A DNA stretch of 64,000 bases from assembly GCA_950097015.1 (NCBI GenBank), contig CATNEN010000038.1:23870001-23934000 (forward strand), written 5' to 3'. This DNA is from Macrostomum hystrix (lineage: Eukaryota > Animalia > Platyhelminthes). This document shows, one piece after another, positions 27,831 through 53,200 of this stretch (position 1 is its first letter; each line of letters starts with the position of its first letter). The notes beneath the pieces were generated by a model. That model worked only from the letters and a program-made list of their open reading frames with translations. It was not told where the DNA came from and made no database searches. Position numbers and translations under genes: made by a program.

Positions 27831-28809
27831 CGAAAGCATTATAAGTAGCATTTTGTTTTTTCCCGTTCTCCATCGCACTTAGTTTTCGCGTTTGACGCGC
27901 ATTCGCGTCATGCCACAGCCACTGGTAAGTAGAGAAAGGTGAAAGAACAGTCGATAGAAAAGATCACATGAGAAATGAGGAATACTTCGCAAGAGGAGAA
28001 CTGCAGTACTATATTCAGTTTTTTCGTTCTCCATTCTTCTACAGCAAGCTGCCATACTCTTGTTTAGAAGAGTTCTATCTAAGCGAGTTATAAATTTAAA
28101 GCATTAATTCATTTTAATAATTACCCTCTGTCCTCGGAAGCCAATCAAGTGTCATTTATCACCGGTCTGCGGGAGGCTAGTCTCCCAGTTGACAAAGTGG
28201 GTTCTTGTTAAAATGGATGCAATTGCAAGCACTGAGCCGACGGATAATTTTCAGAACTCCATCCGATAACGTTAATACGTAGTATACTTATATATAATCC
28301 CAAATGGATTGGTTAAAGCATTAAGTGGAATACAAGTATAGCGTAAAAAATAAATTTTAACCAAGCCATCCTCATGTGTGCAAGTAAGGAAAAAAACTAA
28401 CTTTTTCTCCAATTCCTGTCAGGTCTGTTAGTGTTGGCATTTGGATTATCGATGGCTTGTGTTTTATTTTGCTGTACTTATTTTGAACGTTTCATTTTAC
28501 GATTAGACGACAGTTCCATAGTCTGTTAAAAGCAGGCTTATATAGTATGGGGATATTATTAGCAATGAGGATGACACTTAAAGAAACATATGAGATTAGT
28601 CAGTAACAAATGATTCTAATGCAGGAGCTACAAATGAAGAAAAAGAAGTCTCATTTCATTTTATCTGCCCGCAAAAAGCAAATAAAAAAATTCAAGGGAA
28701 ATTAATTAAATATTCTTTTAATTTTAAACTCATAGCAGTCAACACGAATCAAGTTGTGGTTTGACTAACGAGTTTAAATGTATTTAAAAACCTTTAACAA
28801 AATGATTCT

Positions 28810-30440
28810 TTGATTGGACTGTTTTAAAGAGGCCGCTATCAAAGACTCAATCAGCGACTTTCTGATTGGACTGTTTTAAAGAGACCGCTATCAAAGACTC
28901 AATCAGCGACTCTCTGATTGGACTGTTTTAAAGAGGCCGCTATCAAAGACCCAATCAGCGACTTTCTGATTGGACTGTTTTAAAGAGACCGCTATCAAAG
29001 ACTCAATCAACGACTCTCTGATTGGACTGTTTTAAAGAGGCCGCTATCAAAGACTCAATCAGCGACTCTCTGATTGGACTGTTTTAAAGAGGCCGCTATC
29101 AAAGACCCAATCAGCGACTCTGATTGGACTGTTTTAAAGAGACCGCTATCAAAGACTCAATCAGCGACTCTCTGATTGGACTGTTTTAAAGAGGCCGCTA
29201 TCAAAGACCCAATCAGCGACTCTCTGATTGGACTGTTTTAAAGAGGCCGCTATCAAAGACTCAATCAGCGACTCTCTGATTGGGCTATTTTAAAGAGGCC
29301 GCTATCAAAGACTCAATCAGCGACTCTCTGATTGGGCTATTTTAAAGAGGCCGCTATCAAAGACTCAATCATCAACTCTCTGATTGGACTGTTTTAAAGA
29401 GACTGCTATCAAAGACTCAATCAGCGACTCTCTGATTGGACTGTTTTAAAGAGACCGCTATCAAAGACTCAATCAACGACTCTCTGATTGGACTGTTTTA
29501 AAGAGGCCGCTATCAAAGACTCAATTAGCGACTCTCTGATTGGACTGTTTTAAAGAGGCCGCTATCAAAGACCCAATCAGCGACTCTGATTGGACTGTTT
29601 TAAAGAGACCGCTATCAAAGACTCAATCAGCGACTCTCTGATTGGACTGTTTTAAAGAGGCCGCTATCAAAGACCCAATCAGCGACTCTCTGATTGGACT
29701 GTTTTAAAGAGGCCGCTATCAAAGACTCAATCAGCGACTCTCTGATTGGGCTATTTTAAAGAGGCCGCTATCAAAGACTCAATCAGCGACTCTCTGATTG
29801 GGCTATTTTAAAGAGGCCGCTATCAAAGACTCAATCATCAACTCTCTGATTGGACTGTTTTAAAGAGACCGCTATCAAAGACTCAATCAGCGACTCTCTG
29901 ATTGGACTGTTTTAAAGAGACCGCTATCAAAGACTCAATCAGCGACTCTCTGATTGGACTGTTTTAAAGAGACCGCTATCAAAGACTCAATCAGCGACTC
30001 TCTGATTGGACTGTTTTAAAGAGGCCGCTATCAAAGACTCAATCAGCGACTCTCTGATTGGACTGTTTTAAAGAGGCCGCTATCAAAGACTCAATCAGCG
30101 ACTCTCTGATTGGACTGTTTTAAAGAGGCCGCTATCAAAGACTCAATCAGCGACTCTCTGATTGGACTGTTTTAAAGAGACCGCTATCAAAGACTCAATC
30201 AGCGACTCTCTGATTGGACTGTTTTAAAGAGGCCGCTATCAAAGACTCAATCAGCGACTCTCTGATTTGACTGTTTTAAAGAGACCGCTATCAAAGACTC
30301 AATCAGCGACTCTCTGATTGGACTGTTTTAAAGAGGCCGCTATCAAGGACTCAATCAGCGATGCCCTGATTGGACAGCTTCAAAAGGCCGCGATCCTCAA
30401 TCAGCGACTCTCTGATTGGACTGTTTTAAAGAGGCCGTTT
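28810..30440. repeat. 52-bp satellite, ~31 copies (CTCTGATTGGACTGTTTTAAAGAGRCCGCTATCAAAGACTCAATCAGCGACT)
   Basis: Direct inspection. Confidence 0.97.
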
Positions 30441-30609: not shown

Positions 30610-31702
30610 CTAATTTCGACTGTCTTCATAAAAATCTTCAGCAATGTCGGAATCGCTGTCACTGTCACTACCATCCAAATGATCTGCTTCCTCATCATCA
30701 TAGTCGGCGTCATCTGCGTAGATACTCCGACACTGAGCGGCAACGGCGGCCTCTGTGGCAGCAGCATAGGCCCGGTATTCGGCCATAGAGATACCGGTCC
30801 TATTTAGAAACTGGAGCAGATTTTCCGAGAAACAATCACAGCCAGCCACACTGCGAGCATTGAACTGGCGCTTCGGTTGGCGCGATAGTCGGCCAGTTTT
30901 AATCATAATCTCTCGCCTAGCAACCACTTCGGCATAGTCTAGCAGCCAAACAGCCGGCATGAAAGCTAGAACTTCGACAGAGAAGCCGCACTTTTTTACT
31001 AAATAGTTGGCAATGATATTTAGCTCAACCAAGTCGCGTGTTAGATAATCCGGTTCAGATTCCAACAGTTTCACGCAATCCGATCGACTATGAAACTGTG
31101 TATAAAACTGCAACCTCCGCTGCAACTGGTCCAATTGGTCTGCATCTCGGCTCAGTCTGCGACAGACAGACGGCCCGACTCTACTCAAAAAATATATCGG
31201 CTTGGCAATGCCTAACTGTAATAGCTGCATAGCAGCCTCTTGAAGATTGTCGATCGACTGTTCGTCTGTTACACCGAGTACGGCTGCTTGCGACGGTCCA
31301 AAGACAACATTGCGAATGTCGATACTGCTGTTAGCTTTGATTCTGTTGCTTTTCTTGCTTGATCTAGGAGCAGCACGTACAGTTGTGAGCGGGGCGCCTA
31401 GGAGAATGTGTGTGGGGTTCTATGGTACATTAATTGCACAAAACTGAGATTAAATCAGAACCGTAAAAATTGGCGTTTTAAAATCTATTCACAGGCATTT
31501 AAAAGACTCAAACGCTTCTCTAACGACTGAAAGGCCTCTTTAACGACTCAAACGCTTTTCAAATAGTCAAAAACAAGAATGACAACATACCAGAATGCGC
31601 GATGAAACTACTATTAGCGGCCCGCAATAAGCTGCTAGCAGTACATGCCGGTATCAGCGACTTAAAGATTCGCCCAAGTGGACGAAAATGATTACAGACA
31701 AA
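30610..31702 (-). CDS. MTERF-family protein, MTERF4-like. Exons 31702-31591 and ~31396-30610; no genomic ATG at the 5' end.
   Basis: N-terminus is R/S/L-rich and acid-free (FVCNHFRPLGRIFKSLIPACTASSLLRAANSS). It carries mTERF-like helical repeats (KLLESEPDYL, YLVKKCGF, ARREIMIKTG, FLNRTGISMAEY) and an acidic D/E/S tail as in MTERF4. Family call is by recognition only. Confidence 0.6.
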
Positions 31703-31882
31703 CTGGAATATAAATTAAATAGGTTTTCAATAAACTTTCTAACTAACCAGTCACAATTTTTACCACCTGCGTCTCGACCTTAAACTATGTTATAGATCTA
31801 TAACATAGTTTAAGGTAGAAAACAACATACATAAATCATACGATGTACATCTTATAAATCGTTAGATCTATAATTATTTTAA

Positions 31883-32390
31883 CGAGCGAACAGGGATTTT
31901 GACAGATTGTTATTTTGGAGCAATCAGGGATTTTAGGATATTGTAATTGTAGAGCGAACAGGGATTTTGACAGATTGTTATTGTAGAGCGAACAGGGATT
32001 TTGACAGATTGTTATTGTAGAGCGAACAGGGATTTTGACAGATTGTAATTGTAGAGCGAACAGGTATTTTGACAGATTGTTATTGTAGAGCGAACAGGGA
32101 TTTTGACAGATTGTTATTGTAGAGCGAACAGGGATTTTGACAGATTGTAATTGTAGAGCGAACAGGTATTTTGACAGATTGTTATTGTAGAGCGAACAGG
32201 TATTTTGACAGATTGTTATTGTAGAGCGAACAGGTATTTTGACAGATTGTTATTGTAGAGCGAACAGGTATTTTGACAGATTGTTATTGTAGAGCGAACA
32301 GGGACTTTGATACGAGTATTGTAGAGCGAACAGGGATTTTGATATTGTAGAGCGAACAGGGATTTTGATATTGTAGAGCGAACAGGGATT
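31883..32390. repeat. 34-bp minisatellite (GAGCGAACAGGGATTTTGACAGATTGTTATTGTA)n
   Basis: Direct inspection. Confidence 0.93.
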
Positions 32391-33027
32391 TTAGGAGATC
32401 GTCATAGACAATATTTATTTAGTTTTTTTCTGTATTTACTTTTAATGTTCACTAACCAATTTTTTAATTAGCAAGTTTATAATTGAGTAGATGCCAATGT
32501 TAAAGAAAACCTGAACTTATTTTTGTTACGGAAAGCATCATAATGTCATTGTATTTTTCATCTTTCAAGTAGTTTTATAATCAACAAGTCGAACGCAACA
32601 CAAACTCTATTGAACTAAAACTACGAGTATATAGGACTGACTAAATAATGTAAACAAAATGAAATGCTGATTATGTTCAGAGTTTTTTAATAAATGATAA
32701 CGCTTTTTTCAAACCAAAATAGCAGTCAAACAAACCTAAAACACACAAGACACAACTGCAAGAATGTTTACGTTTAACTAAAATGAGTAATATTATTATA
32801 AAAACTACTAAATTTAGAAGCAATTGACAAAAAATTAATAATGGCGTCTACAAGATATCTGTAGCTACTTTTGTACAGAAGTAGCAAACACATTTTATTG
32901 GTAGAGGTTGTCTAAGAAAATAAATAATAATGTTTTCCGATTTCACATAAAACTCCATGATCTGGTTTGGCCTAACACAGAACAGAGGTCGGCTAATTCA
33001 TAGTCTTTGCGGGGTCAAATTGAATAA

Positions 33028-33600
33028 CGAGATGAGACACGGGAGAGATGAGACAGGGGAGAGATGATACAGGGGAGAGATGAGACGGGGGAGAGATGAG
33101 ACACGGGAGAGATGAGCCAGGGGAGAGATGAGACACGGGAGAGATGAGCCAGGGGAGAGATGAGCCAGGGGAGAGATGAGACACGGGAGAGATGATACAG
33201 GGGAGAGATGAGACGGGGGAGAGATGAGACACGGGAGAGATGAGCCAGGGGAGAGATGAGCCAGGGGAGAGATGAGACACGGGAGAGATAAGACAGGGGA
33301 GAGATGAGACACGGGAGAGATAAGACAGGGGAGAGATGATACAGAGAAGAGATGAGACAGGCGAGAGATGAGACACGGGAGAGATGAGCCAGGGGAGAGA
33401 TGAGACAGGGGAGAGATGAGACAGGGGAGAGATGAGACACGCGAGAGATAAGACAGGGGAGAGATGAGACAGGGAAGAGATGAGACAAGGGAGAGATGAG
33501 CCAGGGGAGAGATGAGACAGGGGAGAGATGAGAAAGGGGAGAGATGAGACACGCGAGAGATAAGACAGGGGAGAGATGAGACACGGGAGAGTTGAGACGG
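33028..33600. repeat. 16-bp minisatellite (GAGACACGGGAGAGAT variants)
   Basis: Direct inspection. Confidence 0.93.
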
Positions 33601-33753
33601 ATGGATAACACAGGGGTGAGGTGAGACGGGGAATAGGTGAGACATGGGAGATAAAAAGTGAAGAGCATGTGCTGAAATGGGCCACCCGAGACAAGGTTAG
33701 TGAACTTTATACATCATAATCCGTCCATACTGCCCCTGGTTTAGCGTCGGGAC

Positions 33754-36700
33754 TTAAGATTGCTCCAGCGATTTGAGTAGATCAGCCAGTTGAGCAGAAC
33801 TAGTTGGAAACTCGCAGAGAGCCAAACCGTGACGAAGCTTCAACTCAGCAGTAGGGTTTGAGCCTGATTGAAGAGCGCGAACTCGCGACTGCAACTGGGC
33901 AGAGTTGGTCTGCGAAAAATTTCAGGTGAGAATATGTTTAAATGGCAATCAATAGTCCCTGTTTTTCAGTATTATTAATAATCATATATTTGCTTTTAAT
34001 GAATAACTTGAAACCCACAATAGTATCGGCTCATTTGAGTAATATCCTACGAATGATGATTTGAGTATATCCTATTCATGATTTGAGTAATATTTTACTC
34101 TTGATTTGAGTAATATCCTACTCATGATTCGAGCAATATCCTACTCATGATTTGAGTATTATCCTACTCGTGATTTGAGTAGTTCGTATTACCCTATTGA
34201 TGATTTCAGTGATGTGATACTTATGATTTGTGTAATATTTTTGCTCACGATAAAATCCAGCTCACCTCATTGGTAATGACCATTGTTCTATCGCCCAGAT
34301 TCATAGCGAGAAACTGGCACTGCTCACTAAACAGCTGATCAGAAGCAGTACCAATCGATTTTAGTAGCTGAAAAATGAGAAACAATATTGAGTGTGCATT
34401 TATAATCTTATTATGTGATAGGGCGGGAGTCATTAATATATAGAGCTGCCCAAAGGCAGTGTACAACTGTTCAGTCTGCGGACTGGCGACGACAATAATT
34501 ATAAAATTTGGTGAAACTAGACCCGCAGCCAGCGATGAGGTGATTGAGCCCACTTAGCTGACTCCTGAGCACACACGCACACGCTCACACAGGTGTGTAC
34601 ATCTGCCCTGACTTTCTTATCGTCAAGGTTGGCTCTCAAAGCCTTCTCTATGCGGCTGCATCCCAAATGAATGTGGCCTCGCCGCGGTACCTTGGTGCGA
34701 GAGATATACGCGTTAACCGCTATACCCTCCTTGGGGAAGCACTATATAAAAAACCGCTTACCGCTCGTTTAGAACCAATTTTCATTGGATCAGCCGACTC
34801 AACTGTGTAGCGCACGACTCTACTAGTAGTAGAAGATGAGACAGAGCTAAGCCGCAGCAGGATGCCAGCTAGAATCTGCCTAGCAACAGCGCTGTGCTCA
34901 TCGCTTCGACTAGCAATGTCATTGTCTAGAGCTCGCTCAATAGCCGCCCGATGCAGCCTACTGAGCGGCTGCGGACCCCCAAGCCGGCGACGAATCTCGG
35001 CTGCGCTAATCGTTGACGAAGTTGACGCAGCTAGGAGATCGTCGCTACGATGCCGGATTTCAACAGCCTGCGGGCCGGCTATAGCGCGCAGTTCCCGCTG
35101 GCCCCGACCATTGGACACGGAGGAGACGATGACAATGTCCAATAGGTCGCCAGTGCGAGCTAGATGTGTGCCACAGCAGAGCTCGCCCTGGTGGCATTCA
35201 GCATTGCTGGCGTCTGACAGAAAACTGACAACACGCACCTGCCAAGAATTGCAGGTAAATATCCTATTATTAGATCTAGAAATCCATAATAATATCTACA
35301 AATCCTATAAAAAGATATACAAATCCTAAATTAGATCTAGAAGCCCACCGGGGGTCAGTGACAGAGCGGTTAACAAGTTTGCCTCTCGTGTCAAGGTCCC
35401 TGAGCTCGATTCCACGGCGAGGCCACATTCATATGGGGCGTCTTCTCCATATAGCCCAGTGAGGGTGTACACTGCCTGACGATGAGAAAGTCAGGGCAAA
35501 TGGGCAGAATTGCCACCTCGCCGGTTGAGGGTCTAGTGTCACCAAATGATGCGCCATTGCCCTCAGCCCTCCTGCAATTACTATTATTATAGTCATAGAA
35601 GCCCCACAATTAGATCTACAAATCTGTAGATCCGCAGATCTGTGTACAGCTGCTCAGTCCATGGACTGATGGAGCTGGAGCCCATTCAACAGCTAGGTGA
35701 ATTAAAGCAATGCAGAGTGAAGTGTTTTGCTAAAGGACACAAAATGACCCATAGGCTACAACTCCTTGGATCTACATAACCTACAATATCGCCAACTCAA
35801 GCAAAAAAGGTCTCACCTTATCAGCATAATCAGTATTCGGCAGTCGCCTAATCCCAGGCAAACTATCAGCCTTTTCTAGAGACATCCATTTGATTCCCAC
35901 AGGCAAATCCTCCTTAATGAATCGATGACAGTCAGCTTCAATAGTTGCTAGGTCGGCCTCTGACAAGTCTTTGTCGTTAATAGAGAAGCTTAGAGTTAAT
36001 TCGTCTGGTCGCACGCAGCTACTCCGTTGCACAGCGTCAGGCCGAAGTTTTACAATAGCTGCCGACAATGCGTGCGTGGCCGTATGGTGCCGCATTAGGC
36101 CCAGTCGCCTATCAGCATTCAGCGACAGCGTGACTTCCGAGCCTAGCTTAGCTGACCAGCCAATCTCCGACGATTGCTGCTGATGCTGATGCTGTTTAAT
36201 TGGTTCAGAACCCGAGCTGGTCTGATTGGCTGTCGGAAAGCTGACTCGATGGAAAACTCGACCCGCGACCTCGATGGCCTCAGCTATGTCCAGTGCGGGC
36301 TGACCTGCCTGAATAGATTAGTGTGATCTAGGGTGCATTGTGGGCTTTTAACCATAGATAGTTTGATGCAATCTGTCATGACGACGATTTGGAAAATATA
36401 GGCAGTTATACACATATGAATCTCACCCTAAGAGAATACGAGACTTCAGGGAATCTCACTCTAAGAGAATACTAGACTTCGGGGAATCTCACCTTAAGAG
36501 AATACGAGACTTCGGGGAATCTCACCCTAAGAGAATACGAGACTTCGGGGAATCTCACCCTAAGAGAATACGAGACTTCAGGGAATCTCACTCTAAAAGA
36601 AGATGAGACTTCGTAGGATCTCACTCTAGGAAAATTCTTAACTTCAGGCTATATCAGTTGCTAATGTTAAACTAAAAAAACCAAGGATTTACCACACTGA

Positions 36701-39700
36701 GAGTTGCCATATCGCTTAGTTGGCCACCAGCTTCGCAATAGAAATTAGTCTTATCCAGCACAAGGTAGAGCTGCCTGTCAGCTGTCTGCGCCTCACCAGT
36801 TGCCTTAGCAACAGTGCTCGCTTGACGCAATTCCGCCGAATCAACTAGACGAGGCGGCGACAGCTCATTGTCCTGAACTGCTAGGCCAATAATGCGAGCC
36901 GTTACTGGTGGGAACTCTGGAGAAATACAGGGTTATTAATATAGAATTTGAGAATCAGGGAAATCGACAACTGGACTCTAAGCATCTGGGAGAGTGGCAT
37001 GGGATTCTGAGAATTCGGGAGAGTGACAGTTCTCTCCTGAGCACTCGGGAGAGTGACAGTTCACTCCTGAGCACTCGGGAGAGTGACAGTTCTCTCCTGA
37101 GCATTCGGGAGAGTGACAGTTCTCTCCTGAGCATTCGGGAGAGTGACAGTTCTCTCCTGAGCATTCGGGAGAGTGACAGTTCTCTCCTGAGCATTCGGGA
37201 GAGTGACAGTTCTCTCCTGAGCATTCGGGAGAGTGACAGTTCTCTCCTGAGCATTCGGGAGAGTGACAGTTCTCTCCTGAGCATTCGGGAGAGTGACAGT
37301 TCACTCCTGAGCACTCGGGAGAGTGACAGTTCACTCCTGAGCACTCGGGAGAGTGACAGTTCACTCCTGAGCATTCGGGAGAGTGACAGTTCACTCCTGA
37401 GCACTCGGGAGAGTGACAGTTTACTCCTGAGAACTCGGGAGAGTGACAGTTCACTCCTGAGCACTCAGGAGAGTGACAGTTCACTCCTGAGCAGTCGGGA
37501 GAGTGATAGTTCACTCCTGAGCACTCGGGAGAGTGACAGTTCACTCCTGAGCACTCGGGAGAGTGTCAGTTGCACTCTAAGTGATATGGAAATTGAGGAT
37601 CACATACTCACCGTAGCTTCGATCATCGAATCTTGTAAACTGGTGCCTAGCTTCAACATCCGTAACCGAAATTTGATCAGCGATCAGTCGTAAACTAGAC
37701 GCAGCGTTGGCAACAAAAGAATCTCGTTGTCCAGTCTGATTTCTAATCAGCAGATCTTTGGCAGCGGCCAATACGCCAGCTGACAGTGGCACCGAGTGTA
37801 ATTCGGCAAAGAATGCTACAACATCCAGGGAGCAGCGACCGCCGGGTGTCGTTAGGAAATCCACCAGCCTCTCTGGCGAGCTGCACGCCTCAGCCAGAAC
37901 AGCCGGTGTGAGCCGATCCAATGGTAGGCCGGCTAGAATAGCGGCCTCTTCTTCTAGAAGCAGACATGGCGCATTTTTAGCAATCATATTAGCCAATTCC
38001 GGATGAGCAGAAGCTAATGATTCGCCAATAAGTGGCGCCAACCTAGCTAGGGACCCCGGCTTTAGTCTCAACCGATAAGCGGCATGCAGAGCAGCCCTAG
38101 TGGCCAATTGTCTGAGCTTGTGCTCGGAGCCGCGCGCTCCGGGACGCAAACCGTCGCCAATGGCAACGGCTAGAGAGCGCGCGTGATCAGCTACAATGCG
38201 CAGCGAAGTGTCCAATCGGTAGGACGGTTGATTAGGCGACACGGCACCGGAATAGGCGGGGCCGCCGCTGTTCGTGGCTAAACTGGCGAATAGCGGCGTA
38301 AATAGGTCGGTGTCGTAGGCCGAGGTCACGCCCTTGACGGTGGCAGGTTAGGTCAATTTAGTTGGGATCAATGGGGTGAGAAGTGGAAGAACTACGGGAT
38401 CGGAACTGGGGTGAGAAGTGGAAGAACTACGGGATCGGAACTGGGGTGAGAAGTGGAAGAACTACGGGATCGGAACTGGGGTGAGAAGTGGAAGAACTAC
38501 GGGATCGGAACTGGGGTGAGAAGTGGAAGAACTACGGGATCGGAACTGGGGTGAGAAGGGGTAGAATTGCTGGATCGAAACTAATGGTAAAAAGGGTAGA
38601 ATTATAGGATAGGAACTAGGGTGAGAAAGGGTAGAATTATGGGATCCGAACTGAGATGAGAAGGGGTAGAATGGGATCGGAACTGGGGTAAGAAAGGGAA
38701 GAATTATAGGATCTGAACTGGGGCGAGAAGGGATAGAATTTTGGGATTGGAACTGGGGTGAGAAGGGTGAGAAAAGACACACCTGCACAAGAGCCGCGAG
38801 CCGCTCCAGACCCATGCCAGTGTCCACAGTTCGCATTGCCAATGAAGACAGCTCACCAGAACCAATATTAGGCCTCAGCTTGTCCATAAATACTAGATTC
38901 CATAGTTCAACAACATCAGGCGCCGATGTATTAACGAAACACCTGGCGCATCTGCCGCCAACGTGATCGAAATGAATCTCGGTGCTAACTCCGCACGGGC
39001 CAGTGTCGCCCATCTCCCAGAAATTGTGCTCAATGCCAAATGGTAATAGGCGCTGATCGCTAACGCCTAGGCTAAGCCAGATGTCGCGAGTCTCAGAGTC
39101 TGCGGGCAGGCCTAGCTCCGGGCAGCCGCCAAAATAGGTGATGTACAGCTGAGAGGCTGGCAGCTTCATTGTCTGGAAGATTTTCGGAGGAAAATAACAA
39201 TTTGAAATCTAATTCTAATGCTAATTCATGATAGCTCAAAAACCAAATCACCGCATTTTTCTGAAACTCTTAAAGTACTTTTAAATCCATCCGAAGTCAG
39301 CAACGTCGAGATATTCAGCGATTCTTGTCGAAGAATCTGGTGACAAGGACAGCTGACATTGAAACAACTAACAATTTAATCAATCCAAAATAGTCGAAAA
39401 TGATTGCCGACATGGTTACATGATGAATTTTGTGAGCAGAAAACCAGACACCCCAACGAGAATCGTTCGATGAATATCTCGACGATGTCGATGTTTTGTG
39501 ATTCTGTTTGAGCGTCAACCTAAAAGGCACAGTGAGAGTGTACACTGCCTGAAGATGAGAAATTCAGGGCAGATGTTCGCGTATGCTTGCGCACGCTATC
39601 TGTGTGCGTGTGTGCTCAGGAGTCAGCGAAATGGGCAACGTGCGCTGTTTTTTCTCGAGACTAAGTACGCTCGTAGCTCGTAGAAGTGAAAGTTAAAAAG

Positions 39701-40304
39701 TTACCTCCGTTAAAAACTTCCAAGCCATCTGGCAGGCGTCGCGTTTCCAATAATCGCCAAAGGACCAATTGCCAAGCATTTCAAAGAATGTGTGGTGACT
39801 GCCATCGCGTCCAGCGGATTCTAGATCATTGTGCCGACGACCGCCAACACGAATGCAGCGTTGAACGCTGGCTGCCCGTTTTAAATCGGCAAATCGGGAG
39901 CCCGGCTCGCCTAGAATGCGAGACTTGAACTGGTTCATGCCGGCGTTAATAAAGAACGAGCCTTCGCCATCGCGGGCAACCACAGACGAGGATGGCACAA
40001 CTGTGTGACTGAGCGAACTAGAACTAAAATGATCTAGAAAACGTGCTCGAATCTCCGAACTGCTAATTAAATTTGGCGATTGTTTCAATAGCCAAGGCCG
40101 GCGGATACGCCTAGGTAGTTGGGGCAGGTCGCAAGCGACAGACGATGATGCAGCAGAGGTGGCCACTGCTGGCGAACCGCCGCAACCTAGCGGGCCGCCA
40201 TACGAACTGCTGGCCAAGTTGCTGCTGGACAGAAGGCGACGATGGATTGAGCACAGAGACGATGGCGATGATGAAGATGAGGATAGTGCATGGCGAAGAT
40301 GAGC
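33754..40304 (-). CDS. AARS2: Alanyl-tRNA synthetase, mitochondrial type. Exons: 40304-39705, 39172-38783, 38332-37612, 36916-36693, 36308-35817, 35238-34762, 34367-34266, 33909-33754.
   Basis: Motifs [78 protein letters not shown] and [10 protein letters not shown], with editing motifs HTATH and ELCCGTH. The long S/R/L-rich N-terminal extension suggests a presequence. Junctions are phase-consistent. Confidence 0.92.
34030..34230. repeat. ~23-bp diverged repeat (TGATTTGAGTAATATCCTACTCA)n
   Basis: Direct inspection. Confidence 0.8.
34505..34720 (-). mobile_element. SINE family A copy with internal deletions
   Basis: Shared blocks CTAGACCCGCAGCCAGCGA, GTGTACATCTGCCCTGAC and AATGAATGTGGCCTCGCCG. 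Confidence 0.8.
35350..35592 (+). mobile_element. SINE family A copy with internal deletions
   Basis: Head A/B boxes, first and last hairpins, and TATTATTAT tail. Confidence 0.85.
36418..36630. repeat. 33-bp tandem repeat (GAATCTCACCCTAAGAGAATACGAGACTTCGGG)n
   Basis: Direct inspection. Confidence 0.88.
37015..37575. repeat. 30-bp minisatellite (GAGTGACAGTTCWCTCCTGAGCAYTCGGGA)n
   Basis: Direct inspection. Confidence 0.96.
38375..38770. repeat. 35-bp tandem repeat (GGGGTGAGAAGTGGAAGAACTACGGGATCGGAACT)n
   Basis: Direct inspection. Confidence 0.9.
39520..39640 (+). mobile_element. SINE family A body fragment
   Basis: GGCACAGTGAGAGTGTACACTGCCTGAAGATGAGAAATTCAGGGCAG...CTCAGGAGTCAGCGAAATGGGCA. 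Confidence 0.8.
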
Positions 40305-42778
40305 CTGAATAGTTTTGTAGAAGGAAGACTTTAATTATGCAATTATTTACACTTGTCTCATGTAACAGTTGAATAGAAATTACATCTAACTATTATCAGC
40401 TTATTATATGTACTGGGCTTTTAACTTACAAATTGAATTGTCTTGGTCCTCTTTAGTAGTGCCAATGATGTCACATTTTTACAAATAAAGCACATTTTCA
40501 ATTAGTACTCCAAAGCTGAAAACTAGTATATTTGTTATACATATAAATTGAAAGCACACACAAAATAACAAAAAATTCATTACTAAACACCATTTATGTA
40601 GAAAAAAAATTATCCATTTTCTAGTATAAAGTTCAAACTAAACCAAGAAATAAAACCTATTTTAGGACTAGTCCAGTGTACTAATATTCTAGCTTGAACA
40701 TTCAACTTTTTGTTTTGTTAGTCAAAGATCACATGGCCTTGCTGAATAACTTGATTTTATTTACTAGATTAATGATTGTAGATTGCTATTATTGCTACTA
40801 AGACTACCTAAAATTATAGTGACCATCCTCAGATCATGTTGCCAATGTTTACCCTTGGCTAAACATTTTGACACTTAACAAACAACTATAACAAAGCGTT
40901 CGCAAAGGGACTAGTTAGCTAAGACTACTACAAAAACCTAGTAACTCATATTAGGGACTCTAGTGAGCGAAAAAAAACGAAAAAAGTGAAAACAGATAAA
41001 AAACAATGCTATGTTCTAATGAAAAAAAGAACATAAATTTTATGTTTAGAAAATAAAGCCTACTATCCATAGAAAGAAGATAAAATTTACTTTACAACAA
41101 GTATTTATACTCTACAATTTGTGCATAAACAAAAAAGTTTTATGGTGCCAAAGCTTGTTACTTTTTTAAAGTATTTGTTGTGTGATCCAAATTTAGAAAA
41201 AACTACCTTAGATAGAACTTAGAAATTTTACTAATGCAATGATACTGATATAAATAGATTAAAAATTAAGAAATAGGTTATCAAAATCTATATAAACAAT
41301 TCTTTTTAGTAAAAGACTGTTTTTTTTACTTTGTGAATTTTTTGGTTGAAATTTTCTTTTCTTTGTTTATTGTAGTATTTTCTAAGTTTATCCCATTAAA
41401 ATTTTATGTAGAATTTTATGTAGAATATGATATACTCTTATATATACTTTTTTATTTTCCTTTAGCGGAATCTACCGGAAACATGTTTCTCTAATGTACC
41501 CCTTTTAGGCATTTCAGATGGCTTTTGCAATTGACTGTAAATAGTAAATTGATGTCTATGTGACATCTATTTGTTAAGCTATGGAATAGGTATGGCTTTG
41601 TCACTTGTTTAAAGTCAAAAGAGTTTTATATTGTAAACAAATAAACACGTCTTGTCAGCATAATAATCCTATTTGATGTGAAATCGAAATTTAGTACTTT
41701 AATAAGTGTTAATAGAAGTATATATAATCCATAGAGTAGATAAAAAATGAACTATAGGCCTATGCTTTTGGAATTTTTAAAATACATAAAAAAATAAAGT
41801 TATTGCAATTTTTATGTCTTCCAAGTAAAATCTATCACAGCCCCTTATGGGAAAAATACATTATGAAAACAACTAAAATTTGGATCAAAAATAGATTAAC
41901 TTTTTTATTACTTGACATATTTATGAGTGAGGTGTCTTTTAACTCAGACAAGCAATATGTGTAACATAAGAAAACCAAAAATAAGGAATTTTTTTACTTT
42001 CTGACTGGAGCCCCTACTCATAATTCAGCTATAAGTTAAAGAAAGCTAGTTAGTGTTGTGTAGTATATCTGACTTTTGGCTGCTGCCACAATATCTTAGA
42101 TTAACACTAGCAATAAATAAATAACTTTTTTAATTGCTAGATATCTGCGTACTTGTGTGAACTTGTTAGATAGGCCTGACACATTGTTAACCTATTTGAT
42201 ATTGACAACAAGCAAATCAAAATAATTTCCCTAGATGTAGTCTGTTTCTTGCTCTTTGTTAGGCCAACTGTTTAAAAAAATTATAAAGTTGCAAGCATTT
42301 GAGCTATCTTATGTTCTGTTTTTATTTGAAGTTTAAATTAGGCCTACATTTATTTATCCTTTTACCTTGTCTGATTGGCATATAGCTGTAGGCCCTAAAA
42401 GCAATTTCCCTTTGGTATAATTTGGCAAAAACTGAAGTAGTCCCCTAAAGAAAGACAAATTCTTTCTGGCATATGGGCAGCATGATCCAGACTAGGCATA
42501 TGGTCAAACCCTAATTTACCCTTACCACATCATACATGCGCAAAACCCGGCTGACCCAGCCAAACCCGCCGGTTGAAACGAGGGCCAAGCAAGGTAAGTC
42601 GCAAAAACCAATCGACCAAGAGCAAAAAAATCAGAGGGGGGACCAAGGGACAAAAAAGGAAGGCATGAAGAAAAGGAAAAAGGGGAGAGAAAAAGAGAGC
42701 AAATGAGAGCAAACTAAGTCGTAAATAGAGCAAAAACTAAGTCGCACGGCCGGATAAGATTTGGGAGGTTGCGCATGT

Positions 42779-45424
42779 GAATCCGGTCCATTTCGGTGAC
42801 AAGTCATTTCGGCGACAACCATTTTGGCGACAAGTCATTTCGGCGACAACCACTTCGGCGACAAACATCGAAACCGCAGTAACAATGGATCTGATAGTGT
42901 TTGCTTATTGAGTATGTAATGTATTTGATTGTTCTACTTCTTAATGTATTCCTGTTATAGTATTTGTTTTAACATGTAATATAAATAGCGAGTTTGGATC
43001 AGTTATGGTCCGCGCTCTATGTGCGTCAACCTCACCTGTCTTACTTATAAGTAGCATCGTTTGCAGTCACCAATATTTTATAACTAACATGTTTGTTATC
43101 TACTTCGTTATTCTACACAGGTAGAAGTGCTGTCGCGACTTTCGTCTCTGCCTTCTGTCCTCTATTCACTCTTTCGTTCTCTGCACTTTTCTTGTTTACA
43201 TCGTCCAGTTCAGTCTAGTTCTTTCTCTCTCGTTATCTCTGTGGCTGATCTCTTTTTCTCTATCCTTTCGTTCTTTCCTCCCTTCTGATTCGTCTGCCGC
43301 TCACATTCTAACCTCCTCTCCTACCCTCACTCGCGCACTCTTGTTATCATACCGCCAACCTCCAGTCTGTTCAACTTAACCATGTTTAAATATATAGTCC
43401 AGGGCACACGCCCTCTCACACTTCACCTGACTTCGCTACTCGCAGTTATTCAGTCATGTTTAGCTGTGTTGTTTGCCACGATCTGGTCAGACATAGGCAG
43501 CAAGCGCTGCAATATGACGAATGTTCCAGGTGGCAGCATAGGACCTGCAACAGCAGCGTGACACAGCAGCATTACCGCCAGCTACAGAGACTGGAGAGCT
43601 TCGACTGGTTGTGCAGCCTGTGCTCATGGCCAGTGCCTGAGCAGCCTGAGCCTGAGCAGCCTGACCCTGAGCAGCCTGAGCCTGAGCAGCCTGACCCTGA
43701 GCAGCCCGAGCAGCCTGAGCAGCCTGAGCCTGAGCGAATTGATTGGCAAGAACAGCAACGGCAAGGTGCTGTCCCAGTAGAAGTACCCCCGCCTCAACAT
43801 CTCACACCACGAATTGCAGTACCATTCGAAATTGTTCGTGGCGGTTCAACCAGAGGCAAAGACTCGCTTGTTGTGGATGGCAGATTTACTTTTATCATCA
43901 GCCGCAGATGAGGAGAGGTGGTGTACTGGAGGTGCACAACGCGTAATACCAAGGCGACATGCAAGGCCACAGCGACTCAGCGAGGCAACCTGTTCACGCC
44001 AGGCCCCGCACAGCACAACTATGAGGCGCAGTACCGGCCTGCTGAGAGGAAGAGGCTGCGCCAGGCAGTTGCAGCGTGAGCTAAGCAGCAGCTCTTCATG
44101 TCGGCGCCACAGATTGCATGCGAGGAGCTGCTGGCTGTTATCGACACCTTCCGGCATGGACCGCAGATGCCCAATCCACAACTGCTGGCCCGCACTGCCA
44201 ATCGCAAGCGTGCGGCAGACCGACCGGAGGAACCGGCCGACATTAATTTCGAATTGCATGCCTCGGTGCCTGAGAACTTTGTCGTGCATGACATCAGAGA
44301 ACCTGGTCAACGACATCTGCTGATGGCAACACCCGCAATGCTACACTATCTCCAACGCGCGACGAACTGGTACCTAGACGGCACATTCAGTGTTGTACCA
44401 GCGCCATTTCAGCAGCTGTACTCACTGCACACATTTGTTGTCGGCCCTGAAGGGCACTTAAAGCAGGTGCCATTGCTAATGGTGCTAATGTCTAGTAGAG
44501 GCTACGAGGACTACCGCTTAGTCTTCACTTTCGCCCGTGATGTCCTCTATGGCCGGCCATCTGAGTGCATGATGGACTACGAGGCAGCGGTGTGGCGAGC
44601 AGTACACACCGAGTTTCCAACAGCAACGCGGCATGGTTGTGCCTTTCATTTCACCCAGGCTATCTACCGCCGCATCCTCACCACTGGCCTCGCACCAGCG
44701 TACTCGAATGATGACAGCACGCAGACATTCTGCCGACAACTCATAGCATTGCCATTTCTGCCTGGCAACAGAATCGCGAATGCCTTCTACACACTGCGGA
44801 GCACGGTCACCGATGTTGAACTGAATGGCCTCTGTGACTACGTCCAGGGCACATGGATCTGCGGCTCCAGCTGGCGAGTGCAGGAGCTCTCAGTCTATCA
44901 GCTAGCCATTAGAGCAAACAATGATCTGAGGGCTGGCACAACAAGCTACAGTGCCATGCTATGAGGGCTAATGTGCAGTTCTACTTGCTGCTGAAGCTGC
45001 TGCACCAGGAGGCCCGCCAGGTTGAGATTGATGCAGCGCTACTTAGCCAGGGTGCCACTCGTCGGGACGCACGGCCAGCAGTCCGTGCAAGGCAGGAGGC
45101 CTACTTCCGTCTCTGGGCGGAGTATGAGGCCAGCCCCAGGACTTTAGAGGGACTTCTGCTCGCTTGCAGCTGCATGAATGCCCCTGTGGGACAGTAAGGT
45201 CTTTTACTTTTAATCGAACTTATAGATCTAATCGAGATCACAGTGCATTTGTTGCCGATTTGTTCCGCGCTTCTGCCAATTTGACAGATTTGTGACTTCT
45301 TTTATTCGATTTAAATAAAAGTAAAAAAATATATAAATAAAATAAATTTGTTCCACGGCTTCAAAAGTATTGTCACTGAAATGGTTGTCGCCGAAATGGT
45401 ATGTCGCCGAAATGGACTGTTTCC
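42779..45424 (+). mobile_element. Mutator-like (MULE) DNA transposon, 2646 bp, defective
   Basis: TIRs are built from CATTTCGGYGACA repeats (from 42779 and ending at 45424). The 8-bp TSD is GCGCATGT (42771-42778) / GTGCATGT (45425-45432). An internal transposase is present. Confidence 0.92.
43456..45197 (+). pseudogene. PHD-FLYWCH-MULE DDE transposase pseudogene
   Basis: Domains in order: PHD-like finger (CVVC...C..W.H..C...WLCSLC), PEQ linker, FLYWCH (VYWRC...C...HNY), then YLDGTF, MMDYE, GCAFH and (after restoring frame) NNDLEGWHN. Lesions are in-frame TGA at 43909 and 44077 and a 1-bp deletion near 44928. Confidence 0.9.
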
Positions 45425-50259: not shown

Positions 50260-53200
50260 GACCCGCCAACCAGCCAGACCCGAGTGAGCCGCTTCTAAAT
50301 CCAATATCCGCTCACCTTCGCGCCGCTATTCAACAATCGTTGAACTCAGTCGGACCGGGTGGTCCAAGTGCCGTACCAGCTGGCGGACTGTTTGTCGATC
50401 CGTTCCTAGGTTGCATGAGTCGGCATTTTATGCCCCATCGAGTGGCCACCGCGCCTAGGATGTCAAGTGCCAGCAATAGTCAGCAAGCTGGCAGCGCTGC
50501 CGGAGCTTCGTTGTCTTCTGCTTCGATTTCTTCAACAACCGGAGCGCCTACTGCTGCAGCCTCCACTGCTCAGCCGCTGAATGTTTTGCAACAGGTTAGT
50601 CTCGCTTTTTTGTTAGAAGTTTTATTCGTTAATATTCGGTTGATTACTACCTAGTTGGAACAACCATTTTTTTTGGGTGGGTAGTGGCAGAGCGGTCTAA
50701 CGCGTTGGCCTCTCGCACCAAGGTCCCTGAGCTCGATTCCGCGGCGAGGCCACATTTTTTAGGGTGCAGCCGCGTAGAGAAGGCTTGGGAGGCTTGTCGT
50801 GCAATTCGCACCCTTGAGGGCCAACCTCCATGGCACAGTAAGAGTGTTCACTGCCTGACTATGAGAAAGTCGTATGCCTGCGTACAGTTTCTGTGTGCGT
50901 GTGTTCTCAGGAGTCAGCAGAATGGGCAGAATTGCCTCCTCGCTGGCTGCGGGTCTAGTGTCACCAACTGATTTGCCATCGCCCGCAGCCCTCCTGCCAA
51001 TTGTTTAATATTTATTTCGAATTATTTAAGTCAGTGTGCAACTTTTTTTAGTCCGTGAACTATTTTGTAAAGTAATTGTTTTTGTTGTCTAGTGATTAGA
51101 GCGTCAGACTCACGACTTCAAGGTCGTGGGTTCGATTCCCAACTTCGCCTGGAACGATTTGTGTCCTTTTAACAAGTCTCTCCATGGAATGAACAAGTTC
51201 ACATATAGCTTTTGTGTTTAGTGTCATAATTTTGTCATAAGATGCCATAAGTGTCATAAGATTTCAGATATCAGTAAACAACTTAATTAAAACAAATTCA
51301 ATGGATCCCTATTATTTAATTTTCAATGAATCCGCAGTTATTCGGTTCTATTCTAAGCGGCACAGCTTCTGGCACTGTGCTTGAGCAATTGTCCAATCTG
51401 GTTAGCTCCGCTGGCGGCAGTGAAACACCCGGCGCAAATTTCATCACCGATTTACTCATTGTGGTCCTGACCAACGGCCGGCTGAGCCTGCCGGACCTCA
51501 TGGCGCTGATGTCAGGCGATGGCAGAGCAATGGACAGCAGCCGCCTGCCAGTTCAGGACTATCTAAACCAGTACCTGCAGCTGCCCGAACACCTGGAGGC
51601 TCAGCTGTCCGCTCTGCGCCCTCTGCTAGCTGGCGCCATCGCCGGATTGCGCGTTGAAGCCCGACCGCCTAGCGGACTGGCGCCGGACGAGCTGCTGCTG
51701 GCTGTTGTTCGACATAATGTCACATCGGCTAGGTGAATGATCTTTGTTTTTTCCCCAGTCCCTACTCTAGGGATCTCCCATTGGTAGGATTTCACATTTG
51801 AATTAAGTGGCAGAGCGGTCTAACGCTTTTGCCTCTCGCTTTAATGTCCCCGAGCTCGATTCCGCGGCAAGGCCACATTCATTTTGGGGCCTTTCGCAGC
51901 CGCGGTGAGAAGGCTTGGGGACTTGTCGTGCAATTAACGGCTTTCATTAACGGATCAACTTCCATGACACAGTGAGAGTGTGCACTGCCTGACGATGAGA
52001 AAGTTAGGGCAGATGTACACACCTGTGTGAACGTGTGCCTGCGTACGGTGTCTGTGTGCGTGTGTGCTCAGGAATCCGCGAAATATACTAAATTGTCTCG
52101 TCTAGTGTCATTAAATTATTTGTCATCGTCTACAGCCCGCCTGCTATTGTTATTTATTAATATTCTTAGAATTTCCCATCGTTGGGATTTCCCATTTTTG
52201 GGATTTCCCTTCCTTTGGTATTTCCCTTTCCTTTGGTTTTTCTAATCCCTTAGAATTTTTTATCTTTGGCATTCCCCTTATTCTGGTATATCTGATAGTT
52301 TTTAATTTCCAATCGCTTATTATTTACATTTATTTTGGATTTTCCATGCTTTGGGATTTCCAGTCTTTGTGAAACCATTATTTTTCGAATATCTTATTTC
52401 AATTTCCGTATTAGCGGGTTTTCTCAAAACGCTCGAAAAAGTGTTGCATTTTACTTACTGTTTGCAATAAATAAAAGTATATAATCTACCCCTTTATCTT
52501 ACCACTTAGAGAGCAACTAATGGCCAAGGAGACGGACGATGGCTTCGGTCAGCTGTTGCTAAACAGCTTCAACCGATTAATAGATGAATTAATTGGCGTT
52601 GCTTTGAAATCACTGGGCACGTCTGGGTAAGTAATAATTTATGTTCAATGTTTATTGTTCGGAAAGGCATGCATTCGACTATTATACTTACCGAATAATC
52701 CCGAATAAAGGGATATTCTGATATAAACAGTTTTGAAGAATCCCAAAAATGATCGGAATGAGGGATATTTTGAGAAAATGCTTCTCCTAAGAATCCTAAA
52801 ATATGTATATTTTAAGTGGGGGGAATATTTAAGAATCCTTAAGTGGGGGGAATATTTAAGAATCCTTAAGTGGGGGGAATATTTAAGAATCCTTAAGTGG
52901 GGGGAATGTTTAAGAATCCTTAAGTGGGGGGGAATGTTTAAGAATCCTTAAGTGGGGGGAATATTTAAGAATCCTTAAGTGGAGGGAATATTTAAGAATC
53001 CTTAAGTGGGGGGAATGTTTAAGAATCCTTAAGTGGGGGTAATATTTAAGAATCCTTAAGTGGAGGGAATATTTAAGAATCCTTAATTGGGGGGAATATT
53101 TAAGAATCCTTAAGTGGGGGGAATATTTAAGAATCCTTAAGTGGGGGGGAATGTTTAAGAATCCTTAAGTGGGGGGAATGTTTAAGAATCCTTAAGTGGG

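Follow-up and report, generated by a model that had tools for sequence, protein, structure and literature searches.

A genomic start codon for AARS2 and a probable leader-borne start codon for its mTERF-like neighbour in Macrostomum hystrix

AARS2, the gene for the mitochondrial alanyl-tRNA synthetase (AlaRS), and an mTERF-like gene lie head to tail on the minus strand of the 64,000-nucleotide stretch of Macrostomum hystrix DNA analysed here (the window; contig CATNEN010000038.1, positions 23,870,001 to 23,934,000). AARS2 is a normal nine-exon gene with a genomic start codon in a small, cis-spliced 5' exon. The mTERF-like gene, as judged from sequence comparison, most likely borrows its initiator AUG from the trans-spliced leader. 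Taken as a whole, this account (a genomic ATG for AARS2, a leader AUG for the mTERF-like gene, and a pair that is possibly one transcription unit) is in our view probably right. A preliminary description of this DNA had assigned a leader AUG to both genes; the proposal held up, on comparative grounds, for the mTERF-like gene, whose Met-less M. lignano models start at FVC, and fell for AARS2, whose ATG is genomic and lies in a cis-spliced exon.

The AARS2 exon that starts at 40304 (E1) follows an acceptor, ...ctattcAG, and has no in-frame ATG before NAGMNQF, as the preliminary description had stated; an in-frame TAA lies 11 codons upstream. Its further statement, that no convincing upstream ATG exon could be found for AARS2, was contradicted at the very joint it had proposed to check in RNA, by the finding it had named as decisive against it, a cis-spliced exon that carries the ATG. 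The RNA contigs came from runs X4, X5, X6 and X7 and were placed on 38766-43600; runs X1-X3 (share 0.07-0.10) were left out. In 4/4 of these public runs the acceptor at 40305/40304 is cis-spliced to an exon farther upstream, at 40515-40430, with an intron of 125 nt and GT..AG ends between them, and translation of the joined exons places the ATG at 40495-40493 in frame with E1. The features of the gene are as follows.

40516..40523, minus strand: alternative acceptors ttttcAG / ctAG of the AARS2 5' exon, probably the leader junction
40430..40515, minus strand: AARS2 5' exon (E0), 86 nt, with an alternative 5' end at 40522; from contig pieces without mismatches
40495-40493, minus strand: start codon ATG of E0, then 22 codons, MCFICKNVTSLALLKRTKTIQF; from frame and translation
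40305..40429, minus strand: AARS2 intron 0, 125 nt, gtaagt...attcag; joint 40303->40429 recorded as 'skips 125, CT..AC (cut +1)' in 4/4 runs
39705..40304, minus strand: exon E1, remainder of the presequence plus the beginning of the class II AlaRS core (PF01411, E=7e-44); contig piece 39705-40303
39172-38783, 38332-37612 and 36916-36693, minus strand: exons E2-E4
36308-35817, 35238-34762, 34367-34266 and 33909-33754, minus strand: exons E5-E8, stop included
33569..33753, minus strand: minimum AARS2 3' UTR, 185 nt, which enters a 16-mer minisatellite at 33029-33651

The AARS2 contigs, 3434-3462 nt long, show the same splicing in 4/4 runs and contain no mismatches (pieces 38782-39172, 39705-40303 and 40429-40516/40523). 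The E0 piece is 40429-40516 in X4 and X5 and 40429-40523 in X6 and X7, with zero differing letters. Beyond its 5' end stand 24 (X4) or 21 (X6, X7) extra letters that are absent from the window and are probably the spliced leader, to judge from their length (<=30) and their position after an AG. No RNA depth was found at 40548-42329 in any of the 4 runs, among contigs placed on 38766-43600. The AARS2 mRNA would begin at the TTTCAG or the CTAG acceptor, where it would probably receive the leader; the leader's AUG would then open only a mini-uORF of 7 or 8 codons (MLWSTN* / MFSALEY*), with its stop just before the real AUG.

The N-terminus encoded by E0 is conserved. MCFICKNVTSL is kept in M. lignano AARS2, in three copies as MC(F/Y)ICKNVTSL; PAA67724.1 of that species carries MCYICKNVTSLL at the position matching E0, and the Ala-starting exon is preceded by exactly 22 codons in both species. 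A leader-supplied start for AARS2 is refuted, because the cis-spliced upstream exon carries a conserved in-frame ATG. The full preliminary proposal, that both genes are without a genomic ATG, take leader initiators at 40304 and 31702 and form one operon, draws on the exon at 40304, which opens in phase 0 behind an AG and contains no ATG in frame, and on an M. hystrix leader that ends in ATG. It is nevertheless highly improbable: 40304 is joined by cis-splicing, in all four runs, to the exon with the conserved ATG and not directly to a leader ahead of the open reading frame, ATTCAG at 40305-40310 falls outside the published trans-acceptor motif, and with a genomic ATG at 40495 the leader AUG is not the sole possible initiator. 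A minor AARS2 isoform with the leader at 40304 may still exist, because contigs drop rare variants.

The corrected coding sequence, from E0 to E8, has 1075 codons. The E1/E2 joint was seen in 4 runs and the loose end leading from E2 to E3 was read in contigs, all four of which continue for exactly 2357 nt after E2, 2172 nt of this being exons E3-E8. The other junctions were placed by aligning the M. lignano orthologue P0124 and picking GT/AG sites; the full-length M. lignano orthologue was found by a search of protein representatives. Exons were searched singly, and joined models were used in frame and length checks only. Exon 1 alone, in a length-filtered search for homologous proteins, gave matches of at most 61% identity. 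The PF01411 match extends across four exons and is joined by a PF07973 match, about 105 residues precede the AlaRS core, the first 50 of them with no acidic residue, and contig C3 of the genome carries another AlaRS locus. By its sequence, AARS2 thus has the attributes of an organellar AlaRS (class II core, second additional domain, N-terminal extension and separate cytosolic paralogue), and import is predicted. UniProt models of M. lignano AARS2 share the error corrected here: they begin with the second exon, and in one of them both genes are fused.

That flatworm leaders can end in AUG, as the preliminary description noted, holds for this host. The published 35-nt M. lignano leader (PMC8629364), which ends in ATG, recurs letter for letter at least 23 times in the M. 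hystrix genome, and at one leader locus the sequence reads ATG/GTAAGA, with the AUG directly before the GU donor. Acceptors of the published Macrostomum type YTNCAG (PMC8629364) lie at 31703-31708, ahead of the mTERF-like gene, and at 40516-40521, ahead of AARS2 E0. By itself, the motif has no discriminating power in the window, where it was observed 206 times against about 316 expected by chance.

The mTERF-like gene has two exons.

31591..31702, minus strand: exon 1, FVCNHFRPLGRIFKSL..., right after the acceptor TTCCAG (31708-31703), with no in-frame ATG; proposed leader-AUG junction
31590-31398, minus strand: intron, gtatgt...cctag, phase 1
30610..31397, minus strand: exon 2, stop included

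Here the preliminary description was right that the exon at 31702 follows attccag and lacks an ATG. The frame is closed by a TAA 5 codons upstream of the exon start, and not until residue 94 of 299 does the genome encode a Met in frame. This Met is not conserved in M. lignano, and invariant residues lie N-terminal of it. No genomic AUG could yield the conserved protein, the reading frame of which opens with the very base that follows the acceptor. The mRNA would begin at this conserved acceptor, TTCCAG/TTTGTCTG, and the leader-joined form would read ...AATTTATTGCATG at 31702; the terminal AUG of the leader would be in frame, giving M-FVCNHF..., a basic N-terminus without acidic residues. With an in-frame leader AUG as initiator, translation would therefore depend on trans-splicing.

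M. lignano models support this reading. The protein is 52% identical, over 94% of the query, to PAA87612.1, an M. lignano entry marked 'partial' at NCBI that begins FVCVRII, at the homologous FVC codons and without a Met. This transcript-based model ends at the homologous acceptor and has no Met in its first 150 or so residues. Two UniRef models of M. lignano begin NQFQ-FVC, reading through the same ttccag, and are likewise without an ATG. The sole homologue cluster is that of M. lignano, with a Met start in 0/3 models. In M. lignano annotation, peaks of mapped leader reads define where genes are cut off at their ends (PMC5730564), and the annotation behind PAA87612.1 did capture the short 5' exon of M. 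lignano AARS2. In the M. hystrix genome the mTERF-like gene is single-copy; the remaining matches belong to a 20-mer repeat in an intron, and a genome search found no retrocopy that preserves the junction of leader and gene.

Could a small cis-spliced 5' exon with an ATG have been overlooked here, so that the leader AUG is not the initiator? AARS2, at the same locus, is a precedent for such an exon; tiny ATG exons are easily overlooked, and an in-phase candidate, ATG GAG TTT TAT/gtgaaa, lies near 32958. We regard this as unlikely, however: the M. lignano transcript model stops at the homologous acceptor although the same annotation caught the short exon of AARS2, the two UniRef models are without an ATG as well, and the candidate at 32958 is probably part of the AARS2 3' UTR, because it lies upstream of an AATAAA at 32899. 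The leader-borne AUG is still the most likely initiator of the mTERF-like gene.

The mTERF-like gene is probably an MTERF4 orthologue. Its M. lignano orthologue bears the UniRef name 'mTERF domain-containing protein 2', and the ESM Atlas clusters closest to the M. hystrix protein are without exception mTERF (score 0.86). The top four Foldseek entries are MTERF4 (E=0.03-0.3), on an AlphaFold model whose poor pLDDT of 48.6 makes them leads only, and the only PDB sequence match, 4fp9_B at E=5.3, is, like the fold matches, individually non-significant. Neither a Pfam search (E<=10) nor a PDB profile search gave a match, and a profile search with the protein returned nothing outside M. lignano. Human MTERF4 acts with NSUN4 in assembly of the large subunit of the mitoribosome. 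Human MTERF4 (MTERFD2; NSUN4 partner, PDB 4FP9, 7O9K) resembles the M. hystrix protein in having all-helical repeats, about 300 residues, a basic N-terminus and an acidic tail at the C-terminus, whereas the M. hystrix protein is without a significant sequence or Pfam match, gave no homologue outside Macrostomum in sequence searches and would share the function only presumptively.

The two genes are in tandem on one strand, as already described, and the distance of about 2 kb given for them is 2052 nt, from the AARS2 stop at 33754 to 31702. Between them lies the spacer.

31703..33568, minus strand: spacer, with minisatellites at 33029-33651 and 31884-32392 and AATAAA at 32899-32894

The spacer holds no opposite-strand gene, and its open frames are minisatellite artefacts only. 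Its raw length is 1.2-1.9 kb and, after tandem-repeat subtraction, 663-817 nt, the range being set by the position of the AARS2 3' end. The published rule for Macrostomum operons asks for same-strand neighbours less than 1000 bp apart after repeat subtraction, with a leader-spliced downstream gene (PMC8629364); the pair shares a strand and lies within that distance. Order and strand are the same in M. lignano, where PAA87611.1 and PAA87612.1 follow each other in accession number on a single contig of 478,184 bp and where the UniRef entry A0A1I8GX24 fuses the two genes into a chimera. On this sequence evidence, there is about an even chance that AARS2 and the mTERF-like gene belong to a single transcription unit that the leader resolves.

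Alternatively, the start codons could be as we propose and the transcription units separate, with a promoter of the mTERF-like gene in the spacer and a leader that trims the outron and supplies the AUG. The probability of this comes close to one half. The raw spacer is AT-rich and long for an operon, the four AARS2 contigs all break off some 185 nt past the stop codon and none reaches the mTERF-like gene, and many leader-spliced genes of M. lignano stand outside operons, 30% of its genes being leader-spliced as against 15% in operons (PMC8629364). On the other side, synteny, order and strand are kept across two species with no more than 52-77% identity between their proteins, and the repeat-subtracted spacer is under the published threshold. 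The contig ends are not poly(A) evidence, because they fall within a minisatellite, the kind of sequence at which assembly graphs break, and contigs do not reveal co-transcription. The fuller proposal of a leader-resolved operon conserved in Macrostomum, which would pair a mitochondrial AlaRS with an MTERF4-like factor and in which the first cistron would carry a leader mini-uORF and the second no genomic start at all, is more tentative, and we put it somewhat below an even chance. If it is true, both the translation of the second cistron and the first residue of its mitochondrial presequence are obligatorily dependent on trans-splicing.

The mTERF-like gene offers a clean Macrostomum test case, a conserved protein whose sole possible initiator would be the leader AUG. 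Genes of this kind receive 'partial' annotations and are easily mis-modelled; they could also report trans-splicing-dependent translation in a transgenesis-capable flatworm. The general interest is modest, because the leader-AUG mechanism has been known since 2006.

The leader AUG as initiator of a reading frame, then called an slORF, has been in print since that year (Cheng 2006; slORFfinder), and the mTERF-like gene is most likely a further case of this published flatworm mechanism, which is not new. The earlier cases, more than 40 cDNAs, come from Schistosoma mansoni, whereas ours is from a free-living macrostomid, with comparative and annotation evidence. In S. mansoni, as proposed here for the mTERF-like gene, the terminal AUG of the leader can be in frame with an AUG-less open reading frame; mostly, it is out of frame or soon stopped, as it would be on AARS2. 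The definition of M. lignano operons is operational and carries no proof of co-transcription, and the corrected M. hystrix spacer of 663-817 nt is near its upper limit. In M. lignano the two orthologues are likewise neighbours, and the M. hystrix downstream gene would be leader-spliced, as the comparison suggests. Trans-splicing in M. lignano (Wudarski et al. 2017, PMC5730564; Ustyantsev and Berezikov 2021, PMC8629364) uses a 35-nt leader identical to that of M. hystrix.

The coding exon of the mitochondrial alanyl-tRNA synthetase (AlaRS) gene AARS2 that starts at 40304 on the minus strand lies directly behind ...ctattcAG, with an in-frame TAA 11 codons upstream, and its earliest in-frame ATG is the Met of the NAGMNQF motif. 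Matches to PF01411 fall in four exon-sized open frames of the locus and a match to PF07973 in a fifth. The assembly holds a second AlaRS locus (C3:15468251-15483678; PF01411, E=1e-103), which matches much more strongly and is presumably the cytosolic AARS1, so that the copy studied here can reasonably be called the organellar paralogue. The features from which a preliminary description had started, that is, the exon starts directly behind acceptors at 40304 and, in the downstream mTERF-like gene, at 31702, are real; the trans-acceptor hexamer by itself is statistically uninformative in the window.

In each of four public runs (X4-X7), all from one study of 2020, a search of sequencing runs found roughly half the words sampled from 30610-40307. 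We take the runs to be RNA because their contigs total about 42-47 Mb per run, because introns are skipped exactly at GT..AG, and because contig depth is absent over 40548-42329, upstream of AARS2. Contigs were aligned to 38766-43600, a stretch picked to avoid long tandem arrays. At the 5' end of AARS2, each of the four runs gave one contig of 3434-3462 nt, which aligned without a differing letter in three pieces:

38782-39172, minus-strand gene AARS2, contig piece 1 (X4-X7)
39705-40303, minus-strand gene AARS2, contig piece 2 (X4-X7)
40429-40516 (X4, X5) or 40429-40523 (X6, X7), minus-strand gene AARS2, contig piece 3

The joint 40303->40429 skips 125 nt with minus-strand ends gtaagt...attcag (the cut moved by one); the acceptor at 40304 is therefore an ordinary cis acceptor and not a trans-splice site. 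In the upstream exon (40515-40430, 86 nt, minus strand) an in-frame ATG at 40495-40493 opens a run of exactly 22 codons up to the junction, and translation across the junction gives MCFICKNVTSLALLKRTKTIQF|AHLRH.... The preliminary description had found no convincing upstream ATG exon for AARS2 and had named a cis-spliced exon of this kind as evidence that would refute it; such an exon is present in all four runs.

With AARS2 exon 1 as the query, a search of protein representatives returned M. lignano PAA67724.1 (1070 aa, "partial"; 77% identity) and its cluster mates. All three NCBI copies of M. lignano AARS2 read SKQNK(T/I)-MCYICKNVTSLLVKNNYGLLYL-ARQ..., and both Macrostomum species have a first coding exon of 22 codons that starts MC(F/Y)ICKNVTSL and is followed by an exon opening with Ala. 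Two older UniRef models begin at ARQ..., the second exon; these automated models thus omit the same first exon as the preliminary description. The public M. lignano models are faulty: P0272 (A0A1I8GX24) joins AARS2 and its mTERF-like neighbour downstream into one protein, and in both P0272 and P0273 (A0A1I8GTG4) AARS2 starts at the second exon, without the MCYICKNVTSL exon.

The aligned contig ends at 40516 and 40523 are each the G of an AG (ttttcAG| and ctAG|), 7 nt apart, and are preceded by 24 (X4), 21 (X6, X7) or no (X5) 5' letters that do not match the aligned stretch. AARS2 is probably trans-spliced to the leader at these two alternative acceptors, because the two different ends both lie directly after AG, because the overhang never exceeds 30 letters, the maximum of a shared leader that a 31-mer graph would keep, because transcription is absent upstream, and because the M. 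lignano AARS2 model starts 18 nt ahead of its ATG. If joined there, the leader AUG would open MLWSTN* or MFSALEY*, with 2 or 6 nt between its stop and the genuine AARS2 AUG, and would form a mini-uORF rather than serve as initiator.

The 35-nt spliced leader printed for M. lignano (PMC8629364) occurs without a mismatch at least 23 times in the M. hystrix assembly, with many of the copies at a spacing of about 11.6 kb. At one locus (L005), the leader and its downstream flank are ...TTATTGCATG|GTAAGA, and an AU-rich tract resembling an Sm site comes next. The host leader thus ends in AUG, as a leader-supplied start presupposes.

A gene with a Cys/His-rich (zinc-finger-like) open frame (43125-45194, plus strand) is divergent from AARS2; contig starts fall at about 43125-43201 and loose ends at 43131, and between it and AARS2 lies an AT-rich interval of about 2.6 kb that appears not to be transcribed. 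Over 39414-39737 (AARS2 intron 1) and 42492-42815 (upstream intergenic), the summed contig depth is very high (300-2100), from many short contigs with loose ends; both are dispersed, transcribed repeats, probably SINE copies like the one at 50675-51005.

The remaining AARS2 exons were placed by alignment to the M. lignano AARS2 protein P0124, with GT/AG sites chosen at the junctions:

39172-38783, minus strand, AARS2 E2
38332-37612, minus strand, AARS2 E3
36916-36693, minus strand, AARS2 E4
36308-35817, minus strand, AARS2 E5
35238-34762, minus strand, AARS2 E6
34367-34266, minus strand, AARS2 E7
33909-33754, minus strand, AARS2 E8

The coding sequence comprises 1075 codons, and a loose end of the X5 contig at 38782, in minus-strand reading, confirms the E2-E3 join. 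Beyond E2 the contigs run for 2357 nt in all four runs, against 2172 nt of modelled exons, and therefore stop 185 nt past the stop codon, at about 33569, within a 16-mer minisatellite (33029-33651; about 39 copies) that begins about 100 nt after the stop. The array is at least partly within the AARS2 3' UTR, and the contigs of all four runs stop after 82 nt of it. Since a k-mer graph would break in the minisatellite, the 3' end reaches at least to 33569, and this point should not be taken for a poly(A) site; the earliest AATAAA after the stop is at 32899.

In the mTERF-like gene the exon start is preceded by ...attcCAG and, 5 codons upstream, by a TAA; the gene was modelled as follows:

31702-31591, minus strand, exon 1
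193 nt, minus strand, intron (gtatgt..cctag, phase 1)
31397-30610, minus strand, exon 2

A tandem array of a 52-mer (28807-30437; 31.6 copies, 94% match) lies directly downstream of its stop. The protein has 299 residues, the earliest in-frame genomic Met being residue 94. Single-sequence and profile searches of 5.8 billion proteins found homologues in one cluster only, from M. lignano:

PAA87612.1, "partial", 306 aa, starts FVCVRII..., no Met in the first ~150 residues
UniRef A0A1I8GTI8, named "mTERF domain-containing protein 2", starts NQFQ-FVC
UniRef A0A1I8IXH5, starts NQFQ-FVC

None of the three models starts with Met, and NQFQ-FVC is read-through of a ttccag acceptor like that of M. hystrix. 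In the Mlig_RNA_3_7 annotation, the source of the NCBI models, gene ends were set where trimmed leader-containing reads peak, and TransDecoder called the ORFs (PMC5730564). PAA87612.1 begins exactly at the homologous acceptor, so its start is most plausibly a mapped leader site in M. lignano. Met 94 is not conserved in the alignment, and well before it there are already invariant residues; the protein must therefore begin further upstream, where there is no genomic ATG. The main alternative is a start from the in-phase ATG GAG TTT TAT|gtgaaa near 32958, but this candidate precedes the AATAAA at 32899 and so is probably within the AARS2 3' UTR. Joined at 31702, the leader AUG would enter the ORF in frame to give M-FVCNHFRPLGRIFKSL..., a predicted protein whose first 41 residues include 4 Lys or Arg and are free of Asp and Glu. 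Judged from sequence, initiation of the M. hystrix gene by the leader AUG at the 31702 acceptor is likely. Thus, of the earlier proposal that both genes need the leader for their start, the half concerning the mTERF-like gene is supported by the comparative evidence, and the half concerning AARS2, which has its genomic ATG at 40495, is wrong.

Pfam gave no match for the mTERF-like protein, and phmmer against the PDB gave one weak match, 4fp9_B (MTERF4; E=5.3). AlphaFold modelled the protein as all-helical, but poorly (pLDDT 48.6); with this model, the four best Foldseek matches were MTERF4-containing entries (E=0.03-0.3), and MTERF1 and MTERF3 ranked next. In the ESM Atlas, all of the nearest clusters were mTERF (0.86). 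These leads are individually weak but agree in direction, and we are fairly confident in calling the gene "mTERF-like, probably MTERF4".

In M. lignano, the AARS2 copy PAA87611.1 and the mTERF-like PAA87612.1 have consecutive accession numbers and share a contig of 478,184 bp, and A0A1I8GX24 (1299 aa) is a chimera of AARS2 (residues 1-1015) and the mTERF-like protein (1011-1299); the order and strand of the two genes are therefore conserved. Between the AARS2 3' end and 31702 the spacer measures 1172-1866 nt, or 663-817 nt with its two minisatellites subtracted, which is below the threshold used for operons (repeat-corrected spacer <1000 bp; PMC8629364) but near its upper limit. No contig of X4-X7 bridges the spacer. 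The case for co-transcription of the two genes as an operon is about evenly balanced.

Both mechanisms are already known. Passages in PMC9851317 and PMC12582326 cite Cheng et al. (2006) for the terminal AUG of the flatworm leader as initiator in Schistosoma mansoni, this role is also mentioned in the supplement to the genome paper on M. hystrix (Wiberg et al., 2023; PMC10468722), and leader-resolved operons have been described for M. lignano (PMC8629364). The mTERF-like gene of M. hystrix would be a further case.
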